This document shows, one piece after another, positions 36,232-44,206 of a stretch of 64,000 bases of DNA. The notes under the pieces are model-generated. The model saw only the letters and a program-made list of their open reading frames with translations, was not told the DNA's origin and did no database searches. Within the stretch, counting starts at the first letter, position 1; each line of letters starts with the position of its first letter. Source of the DNA: Neoechinorhynchus agilis (lineage: Eukaryota > Animalia > Acanthocephala); NCBI GenBank assembly GCA_051530055.1, contig CM121342.1, forward strand, positions 2,328,797 through 2,392,796. The letters are read 5' to 3'. The position numbers and the translations under genes are program-made.

Positions 36232-36492
36232 ATGGCACCGGAATCTAGCACTGGAGCAGGCAGTCAGGTGAGGCATCGGCGAGGGGCGGGGTCCTCAGGT
36301 CGAACTACGACTGCACGCAGTGGACGAACGGCCAACTCAGGTGGTGGAATGTGGAGGTTCTACACTGAAGATTCTCCTGGAATTCGGATCGGGCCAATGC
36401 CGGTTCTAATTCTCAGTCTTGCTTTCATCGGAGCGGTGTTTCTGCTCCATATCTACGGAAAGCTGACAAGGATAGCAGCGGCCAATAAATAA
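36232..36492 (+). CDS. SEC61B: Sec61 translocon beta subunit
   Basis: [40 protein letters not shown]. Confidence 0.97.
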
Positions 36493-36579
36493 TGATCACA
36501 ACGAAGAGGAGATTAATAAAGGCTTTTCTGAAAAAGACTCTTTAATTACTTTTATTTAAGTCGTATTTAGGACAAAAAA

Positions 36580-37320
36580 TCATTCATGTGCCTTTTCTTG
36601 ACATTTCTGTTCTTGGTTGCCACTTTCATCAGAATCAATATTTTGATAAATTGGTTCTGAACTATTACTTGATCTATTGCCATCGACTAATGGAATTAAG
36701 TTGAGATATCGCTTTGAGAAGAACGACATCCTTTCGTAGTATTCTATCATTTTGTTAAGTGAAATGAACTTTAGTCCATTTATAAGATAGTAGCCTTTGT
36801 CGTGAGAATAAATCAAAAAATGGCTCACTTCTCCGTCGTGTTTTATTAGAATGCGGTGGCAACATTTTTATCCGATCAAATTAGTGAAGATTTCAAATTT
36901 TCTTTGAAGATTAATTATGCGATAAAAAAATCCACCGGTTGTTGCCCACACAAGCATTTTACGGATAAAGCATATCTCGATAAGGCTGCATGGGAGTATC
37001 TTATGATAAAAGACCCATCAGGGTGAGTATAGCATCCATTTTGATTTTTCCTTAAAAGAAGACGAGCTGCTTCTTCGCGATTTAAATCAGCTTTGAACCA
37101 TTGTCTTCGGTGAATCCGTAGGCAAGATCGAGGAACGTAGCCCATTTTCCCATTCTGTTCCGCCCAATGCCACCGGGGCTTTTCATCCCCAGTTAAAATC
37201 TTTATTAAGAAATAACGAATGAAATTTCTAATTTTAACTGACCTTAATAACAGAACCTCTCTTGATATTGAGCTCACCAGGACGAAGCGCTTTGAATGAC
37301 TTGGCAACGGTTGCTTCCAT
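36580..37320 (-). CDS. GRB2-like adaptor (SH3-SH2, no C-terminal SH3; multi-exon)
   Basis: MEATVAKSFKA..ELNIKRGSVIK|IL..W..AEQNGKMGYVP; SH2 WF..GSFIIRYS..YALSVK..HFLI..KFISLNKMIEYY. Confidence 0.82.
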
Positions 37321-37442
37321 TTACGTTTAAAAGTAAAGAGAGATGAGAAAATGCGTCGTTTACAAACTTATATCTCCACAATGCGTGCCCCATTTTATTA
37401 TCCTGCGTGAGATTTCCGCTTCAAATCGAGATCCAAACTTGA

Positions 37443-39190
37443 TATATCCGCTGTTCTCATATCACTGATAATTTTTAAATTAAAAACTCGGTCAAACGTC
37501 CTTCGTTTAATTGTTCTCTATTTACTTCCAACTAATCTACCCGGACGGATATTTCCAACCCGACCAGCGGCCGAACCCCTAATACAAAATAAACAACCGC
37601 AGTCTTTGAACAAATCTGAACTCGAGTGTAAAAAACAGAATTCGGTGGAACCATAATATTAAAGAAATTGAATCAACTTTTCAAAGGTTTGCATTGACAT
37701 TCTTCAATGAAATCGTCATGGTACTGTCAATTTCATCGAGCTTTTTTAGTCTATTCAAATAATTACAGCGGTCAAAAGTTCGAGGCTTTATATCCGTTGT
37801 TCTCATATCACTGATAATTTTTAAATTAAAAACTCGGTCAAACGTCCTTAGTTTAATTGTTTTCTATTTACTTCCAACTTATCTACCCGGACGGATATTT
37901 CCAACCCGACCAGCGGCCGAACCCCTAATACAAAATAAACAACCGCAGTCTTTGAACAAATCTGAACTCGAGTGTAAAAAACAAACTCGGCGGATCCATA
38001 ATATTAAAGAAATTGAATCAACTTTTCAAAGGTTTGCATTGACATTCGTCAATGAAATCGTCATGGTACTGTCAATTTTATCGAGCTTTTTTAGTCTATT
38101 CAAATAATTACAGCGGTCAAAAGTTCGAGGCTTTATATCCGCTGTTCTCATATCACTGATAATTTTTAAATTAAAAACTCGGTCAAACGTCCTTCGTTTA
38201 ATTTTTGTCTATTAGCTCTTCTCTCTCTCGTCAACTCAATCGTTCTCTCATTCGTTAACCCGCATTCATTGAACAAATCTGAACTCGAGTGTAAAAAACA
38301 GAATTCGGTGGAACCATAATATTAAAGAAATTGAATCAACTTTTTAAAGGTTTGCATTGACATTCTTCAATGAAATCGTCATGGTACTGTCAATTTCATC
38401 GAGCTTTTTTAGTCTATTCAAATAATTACAGCGGTCAAAAGTTCGAGGCTTTATATCCGTTGTTCTCATATCACTGATAATTTTTAAATTAAAAACTCGG
38501 TCAAACGTCCTTCGTTTAATTTTTGTCTATTAGCTCTTCTCTCTCTCGTCAACTCAATCGTTCTCTCATTCGTTAACCCGCATTCATTGAACAAATCTGA
38601 ACTCGAGTGTAAAAAACAGAATTCGGTGGATCCATAATATTAAAGAAATTGAATCAACTTTTTAAGGGTTTGCATTGACAACCTTCAATGAAATCGTCAT
38701 GGTACTGTCAATTTCATCGAGCTTTTTTAGTCTATTCAAATAATTACAGCGGTCAAAAGTTCGAGGCTTTATATCCGCTGTTCTCATATCACTGATAATT
38801 TTTAAATTAAAAACTCGGTCAAACGTCCTTCGTTTAATTGTTCTCTATTTACTTCCAACTTATCTACCCGGACGGATATTTCCAACCCGACCAGCGGCCG
38901 AACCTCTAATACAAAATAAACAACCGCATTCATTGAACAAATCTGAACTCGAGTGTAAAAAACAAACTCGGCGGATCCATAATATTAAAGAAATTAAATC
39001 AACTTTTCAAAGGTTTGCATTGACATTCGTCAATGAAATCGTCATGGTACTGTCAATTTTATCGAGCTTTTTTAGTCTATTTAAATAATTACAGCGGTCA
39101 AAAGTTCGAGGCTTTATATCCGCTGTTCTCATATCACTGATAATTTTTAAATTAAAAACTCGGTCAAACGTCCTTCGTTTAATTGTTGTC
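37443..39190. repeat. Tandem array (left part): units of 346, 345, 318, 318 and 345 bp
   Basis: Anchor ATATCCG ends at 37450, 37796, 38141, 38459, 38777 and 39122. Confidence 0.97.
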
Positions 39191-42100
39191 TATTAGCTGT
39201 TCTCTCTCTCGTCAACCCAATCGTTCTCTCTCTCGTCAACTCAATCGTTCTCTCTCTCGTCAACTCAATCGTTCTCTCTCGTCAACTCAACGGTTCTCTC
39301 TCGTCAACTCAAAGATTCTCTCGACAAATCAACGTTCTCTCTCTCGTCAACGTTCTCTCTCGACAACGTTCTCTCTCTCGTCCGTCATAAACACTTGCAA
39401 TCAATGCCGAGGCCAAAGCTCCCAACCACCAAGCTCGTCCCCTGTTACATGGACGATTGTCCGGTTAAAACTCAAATATTCGTCACAAATACTTGGGCAA
39501 TAAACAGGAAATTTATTTGCGGTTTCTGTGCAGCCGCCTTGCTCAAACCGTGTTCTCCGTTTCCCCCCCTTCCCAATAAGTACTCAACCACTAACCATTC
39601 CCAAACCCCTAATCCCCAACCCCTTCCATCTTCAGTCTCCCCACCCCAAACCTACTCTTCTCCCTCGCTTAACTCTTTAAATACTGTCCACCCACCCTTA
39701 GCTGTCGGCGCCCTCCAAGACTCCTCTCCACACTCAAATTCGACTACTCCTCAACAATCTTCTCCCTTCCTTAATTCCGTTCCTATCATCTCTCATACCT
39801 CCCTTCCCTCGTCCCTGCACTCTAAGTCTCACTCTGGTCCACCATTAAAACCGAACCCCACCCTTCCTCCTCGGCATCATCTCAATCCTCCAACTGCTAG
39901 AAAAAACCATAAACCCCTCTCATCCTTCTAAAATTACGTTTCAACATTAGCCCCATCAAAACCTACCACCTTCTCTCCTGTATCTCGATTTTCTAGTAAA
40001 AAAGCACACACCCCTACCATCCTTCAACGACTACATTAAGCATCCCTCGCCTCGTAAATTAACTCCTCCTAAACCCCTCTCATCCTTGCCTCCACTCATC
40101 TCTCATCTGCCTAAAACCACTAATTCGCACCCTACCAAATCTGGAAATTTTCGCTTCGCCCCACAAAAGCGAAAAATGCCTTGGACGCGCACACTACCTC
40201 ACCTCTTATCACCACCTCTTCAACTCCCGATATCCTCTCCCCCCGAGTTCATCCCGCATACGCAGTTCCCACCCCTATGGTCCCTACACTCAAATAACCC
40301 CTTACTACAGTGTCCACCCACGAATCCATTACCCCCGAACAACATCATTGGTCAATTCCCATCCCTTCTCTCTCTGCGCAGCTTCAATCCTCTCCGTCAG
40401 TGTCCACCCCTCGTGTGCCTTCTAAACAACCCTTTCCAATAATCTTTTATTCTAACATCCGCAGCCTCCTCCCCAAAGTGGATGAGCTCCATATAGTTTG
40501 CCTCTTATTGCAACGCCGACATCCTTGTAATTACGGAAACATGGCTCTCACCCCATAGCAAATTATCTGCCTTCCTTCCAAACTTTCAAGCTTTTCACCT
40601 CACAAGGGACTTCCGAAACAGGGGGAGGCATATCAATCTTCATCCGCGCCTCTCTCCCTTACCATTGCTCTTCACCCTACCTTTTCATCTCCGACGATAT
40701 TGAAAGGCTTCACATCCAACTTCATCTCCCCCCCCCGCAATGGCCAACGTGAGATCTCTATCGATGGCCTTTATCGCCTCAGATCACTTCATCATATTGG
40801 GCGATTTTAACAAATTGCTGATTCCGCCCTCGCTCTCTCATCTTTCCCAACTCGTTACTTTCCCCACACGCTTCTCCTCCCGCCTAGATAAAATTTTCTC
40901 AAACATCAGGCAATACTCGTGCACTACCAAACTCCCCCGATCGCCTCGTCTGACCATTTCTACGTCCTTCTCTCCCCCTCATCACCTCAAAAACGTTCCT
41001 TTCCCGACTCCTACGTTGTCTGGGATAAACGTGATCATCATACCCACTCCTTTGCTCCATGTGTCAATTCTTATCACGCAAACCGCTATACCATCTTTAG
41101 CCCCGACTCCTCGATTGCAATGGGCTCTTTGTTAAATCTTATAGAATCTGCAATGAAGACCTCCTTTCCGCGCAAAACAATACGAATCTCGAACCGCGAA
41201 CCTCCATGGTTCTCGCCTTTTCCAAAAACTCTTCAAATGCAGGTCACCAAAGCTTTTCGGTCATGCAATCCCGCTTACCTCTCCCTCCACCCCACACTAA
41301 CCAAACGCATCCGTATAGCCCAAATTATTCCTCTCATCTCGTCTCTCGTCCGTTCCCAATCGAAGCTGGAAGCGTGAAATAAAAAATGTCACTGGTCTTA
41401 GTAGATCCACGCTCTTCGCATCTCTCCCCAAATCTGATCTCCTCTCAATCCTCAACACCATGAATAAAAACCTCTGCCCTCCCCAAACCTCCTCTCCATT
41501 GTCCCAACCTCCCTTCTCACTTTCGGACCCGCCCATTCATACATGCCCTTCCTTATTTTCCCCTCTCGAAATCCTAGAGATCCTTAAACGCCTGCCGCCA
41601 TTCTTCTCCTAATTCGACTATCCCAAATTGGGCCATTCGTTTCATCATCCCGGAACTTATCGATCCTCTAACGCACATAACGAACCTTAGCTTTCTATTG
41701 GGCTCTTTCCCATCGTGTCTTAAGGAAGCCCGTGTCGTCCCCCTACCCAAAAGCGATAAACCGATTTCCCCCACATCCTTTCGTCCCATCTCTATCCTCT
41801 CACCTTTCTCTAAAATCTTTGAAAAATGTTTTAAAACCCGCATACTTCCCTTCTTCCTCAAAAACATCTCCCCTTCCCAATTCGCTTTCCGTCCCAATTA
41901 ATCTTGTTCTGATGCACTCCTCTGCATCTACGATACGTGCGCAGCTTAGATTCCAATCCAGCATCAACCGTACGTCTCGTGCAACTAAATATTTCCAGGG
42001 CGTTTGAGTCGGTAGATCACTCCCTCTTAAAGCGCCGTACTTTCCCCTCTCCTCTTTGACATTTTTCTAAATGATCTCCATCCCCTCGCTCCCCCTACCA

Positions 42101-42885
42101 AATATTTTCTTTATGCAGATGACCTTACAGTCATTTCCATCGCATCTCCCTCTCTCCCTCTCCACAACCATGGACGAGCTCAACCATCTAATTTCCTCGC
42201 TCTCCATCCTAAACCTCTCCCTAAAATTATCAAAATCTTTTGAGCTTGTCCTCCACATTTCCAAACGCAATCTTATCCCCGCGCCTCTCCCTCTCCCCAT
42301 CCAACGTTCCTCTTCTCTCCGAATACTGGGCCTGACTTTCCAAGAAAACCTTAAATGGGATGCCCACATTTCATTTACACTCTCTAAAACAAACCCTCGT
42401 CTTTACCTCCTCAAACTCCTCCGGCTTCTCGGCGTATCCCCTAAACACCTTGATCACTTTTATCTTTCTGCCATCCTTCCTATCCTTACATACGCCTTCC
42501 CCACTTTCCTCGCCCTTTCCGTCAATTCTCTCCATTCCCTCGAAACCTTCCACAGGAGAGCAGCGAGAATATGCGGGACTTCACTCCCTCCCCTCGGCGC
42601 CCACCTCCACTCCATTTTCTCAAAAAACGCCCTCCGCCTTCTTCAAGCCCCTCCACAATTTTCTTCCCACATCTCTAAATACTCTTCCCTCGTAAACACC
42701 CGGATCCCAAACCTTTTTCATCTCCACCTCACTCGTACCACCCTCTACCAAAAATCTTTCTTCCCCCAGGCCCAATCTTTCCTTAACAACCGGAGAACGA
42801 GGAACGACTCCCCCAGACACCTTCAGCAAAGATAGATGCTGGCAAGTGTATGGATCGTTCTTCTTAATTAATAAAACGTGTTTAT
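39190..42885 (+). mobile_element. Near-full-length but disrupted CR1/L2-like LINE (PHD-like ORF1, APE endonuclease, RT)
   Basis: Cys cluster ..FICGFC; YSNIRSLLPKVDEL, GDFN, LDKIFS, SDH; FRPISILSPFSKIFEK, QFAFRP, YADD at ~42112; LKWDAHI..LYLLKLLR. Frameshifts and an internal RT deletion. Confidence 0.92.
39198..39383 (+). repeat. About 9 degenerate 18-24-bp monomers (TCGTTCTCTCTCTCGTCAACTCAA) at the LINE 5' end
   Basis: Directly visible tandem repeats. Confidence 0.9.
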
Positions 42886-43417
42886 TAACTTATCTATCCG
42901 GACGGATATTTCCACATCGACCAGCGACCGAACCCATTATATAAAATAAATAAACGCATTCTTTGAACAAATCTGAACTCGAGTGTAAAAAACAAACTCG
43001 GCGGATCCATAATATTAAAGAAATTGAATCAACTTTTCAAAGGTTTGCATTGACAACCTTCAATGAAATCGTCATGGTAATGTCAATTTCATCGAGCTTT
43101 TTTTAGTCGATTCAAATAATTACAGCGGTCAAAAGTTCGAGGCTTTATATCCGCTGTTCTCATATCACTGATAATTTTTAAATTAAAAACTCGGTCAAAC
43201 GTCCTTAGTTTAATTGTTTTCTATTTACTTCCAACTTATCCACCCGGACGGATATTTCCGAACTCGAGTGTAAAAAACAGAATTCGGTGGAACCATAATA
43301 TTAAAGAAATTGAATCAACTTTTCAAAGGTTTGCATTGACATTCTTCAATGAAATGGTCATGGTACTGTGAATTTTATCGAGCTTTTTTAGTCTATTTAA
43401 ATAATTACAGCGGTCAA
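42886..43417. repeat. Tandem array (right part), including one internally deleted unit
   Basis: Resumes at AACTTATCTATCCGGACGG. Anchor ends at 43153; deletion near 43260. Confidence 0.95.
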
Positions 43418-43789
43418 ATCTTCATCTTTTAAATTCGCTGTTGCTGATAAACTCATTTTCTCCGAATTCATGTTTGTGTTTTTATGAGTTAATGCGAGTG
43501 CGGTTGTATCCATCATCAATCCAACTTTTTATACTATGTACAAATAAAAGAATTAAAAAGCTAAAATTTAAATTTTGTAAAATTGAATTTCACTGTTTCA
43601 ATGGTTCTTATGGTAAAAACGCTGGTAACTCTTTTGTCTAGAAAATGTCAAGAACTAGAGCACAAAAGATGACATCCACGTTCTTATTGTTCCGAAATGC
43701 AAGCGAAGAAAAGGAGTTTTAAAATCAACACCCCTCAATGTCACTTTTCTTTGGAAAAAAGACAAAAGGATACATTCAAAACGCTGAAA

Positions 43790-43858
43790 GGACAACACCG
43801 GGGATAGGATTCGCCAACGTGCAATGAAATTCATCCCGGTGACAATGATATATGACAA
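43790..43858 (+). repeat. Dispersed copy of the 55.8-56.0 kb hairpin-arm sequence
   Basis: ACAACACCGGGATAGGATTCGCCAACGTGCAATGAAATTCATCCCGGTGACAATGATATATGACA resembles 55967-56030. Confidence 0.7.
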
Positions 43859-43993
43859 ATAAAATAGTTACCATATTTTCTAACCTGCAGGAGATGGTGA
43901 AGTCATAAAAACTTTCTTTGTCTTATATTCGCAGTTATATTTCTATCTAAAAACGAAACTTACGTTCGCTGAAAAAAGACAAATTGCAAGAAA

Positions 43994-44206
43994 ATGGGTT
44001 CAAAAGCCGTTGTAGTTGCTAAACCGATAATTAGTAAGCGCATATTTGTAGTAAACACCATACAAATTTTGGCATTTATGTCCATCGCCTGCGCTCATAT
44101 AATAATGGCACTTATCACAATGCCGTTATGGAGCTTCAGAGCATATGTATATGAAGATACTAAGACTTTGGAAGAAAATCCTTGGTGGAAAATATGGGAT
44201 ACGTGA
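43994..44206 (+). CDS. Possible first exon of a membrane protein (one TM segment)
   Basis: ATG followed by hydrophobic IQILAFMSIACAHIIMALITMPLW. Downstream exons not resolved. Confidence 0.3.
   Translation: MGSKAVVVAKPIISKRIFVVNTIQILAFMSIACAHIIMALITMPLWSFRAYVYEDTKTLEENPWWKIWDT

Follow-up and report, generated by a model that had tools for sequence, protein, structure and literature searches.

A degenerate LINE and two units bearing its 5' remnant in a tandem array of Neoechinorhynchus agilis, probably left by one insertion and subsequent local array dynamics

The analysed window, a stretch of 64,000 nucleotides from the genome of the acanthocephalan Neoechinorhynchus agilis, contains a short tandem array in which one unit is interrupted by a nearly full-length but degenerate LINE and two further units carry a short piece of the 5' end of this element. 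A single LINE insertion, with local dynamics of the array acting afterwards, very probably explains this arrangement. Descent of the three junction-bearing units from a single insertion is supported by a junction of AGCT and LINE monomer that is unique to the locus and by a private G that the three units share, which together identify the three junctions as one event.

The array (positions 37443-43417 of the window) comprises seven units with a basic length of 345 bp, as defined by TRF periods of 318 and 345 and by unit alignment. Units U1 (37443-37787), U2 (37788-38132) and U5 (38769-39113) are 345 bp long, the variant units U3v (38133-38450) and U4v (38451-38768) are 318 bp long, U6 is split by the LINE into 39114-39194 and 42887-43140, and U7 (43141-43417) has its own separate 61-bp deletion between 43259 and 43260. 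The array part 5' of the LINE (37443-39194, no strand assigned) runs from U1 to U5 and ends 81 bp into U6; the part 3' of the LINE (42887-43417, also without assigned strand), composed of the 3' part of U6 and of U7, is more diverged in the alignment and difference tables when compared with the upstream units. The units stand head to tail and in register and share variants in blocks between non-adjacent members, as is characteristic of concerted evolution: in segment C, U1 differs from U3v at one of 166 sites and U2 from U5 at two of 165, and U4v is a mosaic whose 'AC' at alignment columns 263-264 is shared solely with the post-LINE unit part.

A search of the 46-Mb genome placed all full-unit matches within C2:2366239-2372238, which confines the array to one locus, and 318-bp units were absent beyond it. 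The nearby genes are an SH2-domain gene, with a coding exon at 36915-37321 on the minus strand (Pfam SH2, E 2e-6) and its start some 120 bp outside the left edge of the array, and Sec61-beta, at 36232-36492 on the plus strand (Pfam Sec61_beta, E 4e-18). The possibility that the unit is a structured RNA gene (spliced-leader RNA, snRNA or 5S) serving as the target of a specialised LINE was rejected, as Rfam gave no match at E up to 1 over 36500-44000.

The order and number of units are those of an assembly for which about 50 worms were pooled; it was built with MaSuRCA, and haplotype purging and scaffolding followed (PMC12690905). Assemblies of this type are prone to errors in tandem arrays, and the LINE-bearing unit and its deletion derivative might be alleles of the pooled sample, read errors or chimeras set side by side, in which case the true array would differ in unit order or number. 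However, U3v and U4v are 98% identical overall rather than identical, differing at one of 82 sites in segment A and at four in segment C, they form a consistent mosaic with their neighbours, and their junctions are clean and in register; an assembly artefact is considered unlikely.

The unit itself contains retroposon sequence. About 95 bp of each intact unit, at 37536-37632 on the plus strand in U1, comes from the 3' region of a sister retroposon family (X), as identified by dispersed matches of 76-93% identity, and alignment of the tails shows that the X sequence continues into a LINE-type tail. The unit bases displaced by the LINE remnant in the 318-bp units mostly coincide with this piece, which also heads another tandem array, with a period of about 303 bp, at C2:1.306-1.319 Mb; no dispersed matches in the genome were found for the remainder of the unit. 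Direct DNA similarity between X and the window LINE was rejected, with no blastn match between them and a relation visible only in the aligned tails. The unit sequence upstream of the insertion was also considered as a decayed LINE tail in head-to-tail arrangement, and this was discarded when 114-292 of 1000 shuffles reached the observed local score.

The LINE (39195-42886, plus strand) is 3.7 kb long with many stops and frameshifts, is without about 290 bp of internal sequence present in one roughly 4.0-kb copy, and has a sense strand of 37% C and 11% G. A fragment at 41698-41901 matches the reverse transcriptase domain RVT_1 at E 8e-6, below the Pfam cut-off, and family copies exceed the cut-off both for RVT_1 (E 9e-22 in L061 and 2e-17 in L078) and for the APE endonuclease (Exo_endo_phos, E 7e-12 in L017). 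The calls on family copies used natural sequences rather than a consensus or repaired one. The ORF fragments of the window copy itself have no Pfam endonuclease match and are almost blank in Pfam overall because the sequence has decayed, and the window DNA homologous to the endonuclease region of the family copies is 82-96% identical to them. The element is an APE-type non-LTR retrotransposon, with the endonuclease N-terminal to the reverse transcriptase.

The family is abundant, with at least 1499 reverse transcriptase candidates in the genome, and includes at least 240 candidate 3' ends versus at least 49 candidate 5' ends, both being lower bounds obtained with different queries. A conserved 3' end and many 5'-truncated copies, as is typical of LINEs, characterise the family; the common 3' end is ..AATAAAACGTGTTTAT, terminating in ..GTTTAT(ATA) with no poly(A) tail. 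A target-site duplication of 6 bp (TAGATG) occurs in the single contiguous copy readable at both ends (L006+L083). With a divergence of 3.9% from the family majority, the window copy is typical of the family, whose copies range over 2-5%. Its 5' region (39199-39382, plus strand; TRF periods 24 and 48) consists of about nine tandem monomers of 16-24 bp, GTTCTCTCTCTCGTCAAC with or without TCAATC, and other full-length copies are headed by the same monomers in varying number and starting phase.

Both junctions of the insertion agree with the initial annotation, which had placed the LINE after TCTATT with a loss of about 7 bp and no clear target-site duplication. The LINE is preceded by ..GTCTATT, ending at 39194, and the unit continues at AACTTATC from 42887; the seven bases TACTTCC of intact units are gone, and no target-site duplication was found in the junction alignment. 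The two upstream units that it had described as switching at TCTATT into the LINE 5' monomer correspond to U3v and U4v, which leave the unit sequence at the same point as the LINE insertion. Their remnants, at 38214-38259 and 38532-38577 on the plus strand, are identical 46-bp segments of AGCT and about two monomers, and agree with LINE bases 1-46 at 41 positions, with five differences (11%). The remnants rejoin the unit at CCGCATTC, replacing 73 unit bases and giving the variant length (345 - 73 + 46 = 318).

The same two features mark all three junctions. A 22-base junction string, AGCT[G/C]TTCTCTCTCTCGTCAAC, occurs three times in 46 Mb with at most one mismatch, each time in the array, and its reversed-pattern control has zero occurrences, so the matches are not due to chance. 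The AGCT start was not seen at any other inspected 5' end (about 25). The G at alignment column 79 (GTCTATT) is common to U3v, U4v and U6, in place of the C or T carried by all remaining units. In segment A, the 5' part of U6 differs from U3v and U4v at one to two of 82 sites, and from U3v alone at one of 82.

The initial annotation had left open whether LINE sequence recurs in the array by repeated insertion at one site or by amplification of a deleted insertion. Three units with LINE sequence at one and the same position would be expected of a site-specific LINE inserting repeatedly at TCTATT, with two insertions later cut to 46 bp, and another copy, L064, carries the same nine bases, TAACTTATC, after its LINE end. 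However, the target array is unique, so that the more than 1000 other family copies necessarily lie elsewhere, and their flanks share only AT-richness with it. The flanks of 28 aligned 3' ends of other copies and 100 listed flanks after AAACGTGTTTAT are unrelated to the array, as are those of about 25 other 5' ends, which have differing monomer phases and numbers; no independent copies in the same target position were found among them. Independent 5' ends vary in phase and length, whereas the three local ones share AGCT, the monomer and the linked private G, and two independent deletions would need identical breakpoints on both sides. Repeated site-specific insertion is therefore extremely improbable. 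The tabulation of flanks had been proposed as the check on site specificity, unrelated flanks and purely local 318-bp units being taken to indicate a one-off local duplication, and both were found. Of the two alternatives, amplification of a deleted insertion is the one supported, by the identical, locus-unique junction and the private upstream G, its extent being a single doubling.

The string TTTAT-TAACTTATC occurs twice in the genome, in the window copy and in L064. A parent-daughter link or 3' transduction between these copies was rejected: over 790 bp no minority allele is common to both, the two are no closer to each other than to further copies, and past the shared string their flanks are unrelated.

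From this anatomy, we infer the following order and mechanism of rearrangement. An active member of the APE- and RT-encoding family would have entered one unit of the pre-existing array in a single event of target-primed reverse transcription, with seven target bases lost and no duplication made. An illegitimate event would then have joined LINE base 46, which closes the second monomer (..AAC), to the CCGCATTC of an array unit, producing a 318-bp unit that retained AGCT and about two monomers. This joining may have been an unequal exchange between sister chromatids that involved an upstream unit, which would leave the intact LINE downstream in a single step, or a deletion in a duplicated copy. 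Ordinary unequal crossover between units would subsequently have doubled the variant into U3v and U4v, and the units upstream of the LINE would have continued to homogenise as the part behind it was excluded and diverged.

Target-primed reverse transcription truncates LINEs at their 5' ends, so a retained 5' fragment implies deletion and cannot reflect a fresh insertion. The rejoining sequence of the remnants reads CCGCATTCATTG, as in U5, and the post-LINE sequence today reads ACGCATTCTTTG; because the remnant rejoins like U5, a simple intra-unit deletion needs a later mutation, whereas unequal exchange does not. The likeness of segment C between U3v and U1 and the 'AC' mosaic of U4v also fit unequal exchange. 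The microhomology at the breakpoint (CAAC or CAACC) cannot be fixed, owing to the repetitive monomers. In timing, the family-typical divergence of the window copy fits this history, and the five differences between remnant and LINE are consistent with divergence since an early split. The 11% that they represent exceeds the divergence of the flanking units, which counts against the proposed history, and monomer turnover could account for this excess.

The same five differences, together with the identical 5' junctions of remnants and full copy, could also be read as evidence that the 46-bp remnant is older and that the full-length LINE in U6 arrived later, through recombination of a new cDNA or ectopic copy with the monomers, which supply the homology. 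Even so, a full insertion must already have taken place at this site for the remnant to arise, and in unit coordinates the two junctions of the full copy are 7 bp apart, as for a primary insertion, compared with 73 bp in the remnants. It adds steps with no gain, and is highly improbable next to a primary insertion in U6 from which the remnants derive.

The array had also been read as absorbing a LINE promoter. This is unsupported, as about two of at least nine monomers are kept, and in two copies only. It is very unlikely that putative promoter monomers make the 318-bp units new transcription starts between the SH2-adaptor gene and its neighbour, that pairing of the RNA tail chose the insertion site, or both. 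Such pairing would involve a LINE tail variant (..UUAUUAACUUAUC, also at C2:12327941) and the native AACTTATC of the unit.

Several features of the locus have counterparts in known systems. In the Drosophila Rsp and 1.688 satellites, transposable elements lie near the array ends and the centres are homogenised (Khost et al. 2017, PMC5411766), a pattern for which the accretion model of McAllister and Werren is cited there. As at those loci, the element described here lies inside the array, in the sixth of seven units and so towards one end, and the uninterrupted side is more homogeneous; unlike them, the array has seven intergenic units beside genes rather than at least 100 kb of heterochromatin, and a fragment of the element became part of two repeat units. 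Tandem repeats derived from or containing transposable elements have been described (McGurk and Barbash 2018, PMC5932611) and reviewed (PMC6947457, PMC12628747, PMC9659126). In such repeats element sequence is carried and multiplied by unequal exchange, as here, where the 345-bp unit also has a retroposon piece; this locus differs in having, instead of a tandem element dimer, a 46-bp 5' remnant, probably made by deletion and amplified only once.

Comparison with other LINEs also reveals both likenesses and differences. Site-specific non-LTR retrotransposons include R1 and R2 in rDNA, Tx1, NeSL and CRE in spliced-leader genes, and TRAS and SART in telomeric repeats. They resemble the present case in that LINE sequence occurs at the same position in several units, but the target in the window is unique and the other copies of the family lie in unrelated DNA. 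Small target-site deletions in place of duplications have been described for human L1 in cultured-cell assays, similar to the window LINE, which lost 7 bp of target, has no duplication and begins with AGCT as four additional bases at its 5' junction; unlike human L1, the family is without a poly(A) tail and usually duplicates a short target site (6 bp, from one copy). Mouse L1 elements carry promoter-active 5' monomers of about 200 bp, and the 5' region of the window family is similarly a variable number of tandem monomers, although these are 16-24 bp long.

The locus is a small, clear case of the known interplay between transposable elements and satellites, in which the structure records the decay of an element in a tandem array as a by-product of ordinary deletion and unequal crossing-over. 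Its significance beyond the genome of Neoechinorhynchus agilis is slight, with support for neither a new targeting mechanism nor promoter capture. Within that genome, it provides a snapshot of an array apparently digesting a retrotransposon, through insertion, an illegitimate exchange leaving a 5' stub, duplication of the unit with the stub and exclusion of the units behind the LINE from homogenisation, and it indicates that in the compact 46-Mb genome of this acanthocephalan even short intergenic arrays are partly made of retroposon tails.

The 318-bp variant units of the tandem array at 37443-43417 probably descend from a single LINE insertion within that array. Sequence reading and alignment of the units (A1) gave seven units, U1-U7, and TRF reported one array with periods of 318 and 345 from 37443 to 39230, as well as short 16-48-bp repeats at 39199-39382. 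In A1, U1, U2 and U5 are 345 bp each and the variants U3v and U4v 318 bp each; U6 breaks off after ..GTCTATT (39194), gives way to 3,692 bp of foreign sequence, the LINE copy (39195-42886), and restarts at AACTTATC (42887); and U7 (43141-43417) carries its own 61-bp deletion with a junction at 43259/43260, the array fading to diverged sequence at about 43417. The TACTTCC of intact units is absent from the U6 split, where comparison with intact units revealed no target duplication. U3v and U4v depart from the unit after the same TCTATT as U6, continue into a 46-base LINE 5' stub (38214-38259 in U3v and 38532-38577 in U4v), which is identical at 41 positions to the opening 46 bases of the insert, and re-enter the unit at CCGCATTC, with 73 unit bases replaced. 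Every element of the initial annotation's description of the array, the insertion and the variant units was borne out by this reading and by A1. Each unit also contains a minus-strand open frame of 41 codons (MRT[AT]DIKPRTFDRCNYLNRLKKLD.., 37681-39132), which is kept simply through the similarity of the units, with no evidence of coding.

N. agilis is a fish-parasitic acanthocephalan with a draft genome of 46.2 Mbp in 102 contigs, three of them major (PMC12690905). The assembly searched here (46,219,100 bases, 102 contigs) was made from pooled worms (PMC12690905), and the array structure is taken from it alone. The array adjoins a Sec61-beta gene (36232-36492, plus strand) and an SH2-domain gene exon (36915-37321, minus strand), starting about 120 bp from the latter. 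Elsewhere in the window, an 18-bp tandem repeat at 2420-2883 has about 26 copies with 73% matches.

The window LINE copy is badly decayed, with a longest open frame of 254 codons and a single fragment that still touches the RVT_1 model, and its genomic relatives share 84-96% DNA identity with it. Family copies encode RVT_1 (E 9e-22) and Exo_endo_phos (E 7e-12), an endonuclease of the APE type, and the family's proteins have a high content of Pro, Ser and Leu. For a genome of 46 Mb the family is very abundant, with at least 1499 RT, at least 240 3'-end and at least 49 5'-end candidates, counts that are lower bounds from different queries; 3' ends outnumber 5' ends, as is usual where many copies are 5'-truncated. 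Copies end 3' in ..AATAAAACGTGTTTAT; the bases after it are usually ATA(A/T) and in rare cases (TTA)n, and poly(A) was absent from all of the 28 aligned 3' ends and 100 listed terminal-string matches. Tandem monomers of 16-24 bp (GTTCTCTCTCTCGTCAAC with or without TCAATC) make up the 5' end, and copies vary in monomer number and in starting phase. In the window copy (39195-42886) and in family copies, C makes up 37% of the sense strand and G 11% (GC skew about -0.5), a bias that characterises the family as a whole and is not due to decay. Natural copies were used throughout these comparisons, without a consensus or repaired element: about 290 bp that lie inside a contiguous ~4.0-kb copy (L027+L078) are missing from the window copy, whose last 790 bp diverge from the family majority at 3.9% of sites, within a family range of 2-5%. 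Among the few contiguous copies that were readable, one (L006+L083) has the target-site duplication TAGATG, and two others gave nothing clear.

Repeated insertion at one site, one of two histories proposed in the initial annotation, is contradicted by the genome search: full-unit matches are confined to C2:2366239-2372238, the array itself, and among 28 aligned 3' ends, 100 listed 3'-terminal-string matches and about 25 5' ends, other LINE flanks showed no relation to the array or to each other beyond AT-richness, the outcome that had been named as refuting this history. The LINE has no target specificity. The 3' junction AAACGTGTTTAT-TAACTTATC is common to the window copy and one other locus (L064 / L090, C2:12327941-12327961, minus strand), and the nine bases TAACTTATC follow TTTAT at just these two junctions in the genome. 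The flanks of the two copies show no similarity past TAACTTATC, and no derived variants common to both and no special kinship were found. Pairing of a LINE tail variant with the target could possibly have produced this junction, and one case proves nothing.

The other proposed history, amplification of a deleted insertion, holds as one doubling only, with identical stubs, a shared unique junction and a private base. The LINE part opens with AGCT plus monomer in U3v, U4v and U6, a start found in none of about 25 other LINE 5' ends examined; a genome-wide search for the 22-base junction string, allowing at most one mismatch, gave three occurrences, all of them within the array; and two bases before TCTATT these three units have a private G, at a position occupied by C or T in the other four. 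U3v and U6 differ at one site over the 82 bases upstream of the junction. Because target-primed reverse transcription begins at the 3' end of a LINE, the stub is a leftover of deletion, not a fresh insertion. The AGCT start, the private G and this 5'-stub logic tie the 318-bp units to what was probably a single insertion, that in U6. In the simplest history, sister chromatids would have undergone an illegitimate unequal exchange that joined LINE base 46 of U6 to an upstream unit at its CCGCATTC position; this in one step would place a stub-bearing unit upstream and keep the intact LINE downstream, the order observed, and the variant would then have been doubled by normal unequal crossover. Exchange with an upstream unit would also explain the upstream (U5/U1) character of the sequence that follows the stub, which is unlike that now behind the LINE. 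U3v and U4v have identical stubs and 5 site differences between their unit parts; the distal part of U3v differs from U1 at 1 of 166 sites, and an 'AC' is common to U4v alone and the unit part behind the LINE, a mosaic of the kind that repeated exchange would produce. The breakpoints lie in CAAC/CAACC-like motifs, where microhomology of a few bases is possible, exact placement being barred by the repetitive monomers. The mechanism behind the 318-bp units is ordinary.

Nothing supports the further suggestion that the array has captured a LINE promoter. Two copies of the stub exist, each with about two of nine or more monomers, and Rfam gave no RNA family match at 36500-44000. Mouse L1 monomers have a promoter role, and such a role for the monomers here would be an analogy with them, not a result.

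About 95 bp of every intact unit (e.g. 37536-37632) is homologous to a dispersed element, and the remainder of the unit has no dispersed match in the genome. Complete copies of this element continue into a tail like the LINE's own (..GGTACATGG..TTAAT.AAA.CGT.TT..), so the segment represents 3' sequence of a sister retroposon family, X. A 44-bp part of it (unit positions 144-187) recurs every ~303 bp over at least 13 kb at C2:1305781-1318821, with at least 40 matches, each of 44 bp at 91-93% identity to the 345-bp unit; this region is another tandem array, far longer than the first, built on the same retroposon-tail fragment. The retroposon-derived segment, altered in 3 of 7 units, contains most of the 73 bases that the stub replaces in U3v and U4v and most of the 61 deleted from U7, and the U7 deletion is independent of the U3v/U4v replacement. 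Elsewhere, LINE 5' monomers directly abut an X-type 3' tail in a head-to-tail pair (L005:1795-2000, minus strand), and X-like sequence immediately precedes the monomers in the upstream flank of L002; such pairs fit either insertion beside an older tail or template switching in reverse transcription.

In the central segment, about 10 of 67 sites distinguish U1, U2 and U5 from the portion of U6 that lies behind the LINE, which at several of these keeps the state of the segment's dispersed relatives (GAACCCATTAT), indicating that the upstream units underwent homogenisation later than the insertion and that those behind the LINE were cut off, the same behaviour as in TE-interrupted arrays, where TEs and divergent units are found towards the ends (PMC5411766).
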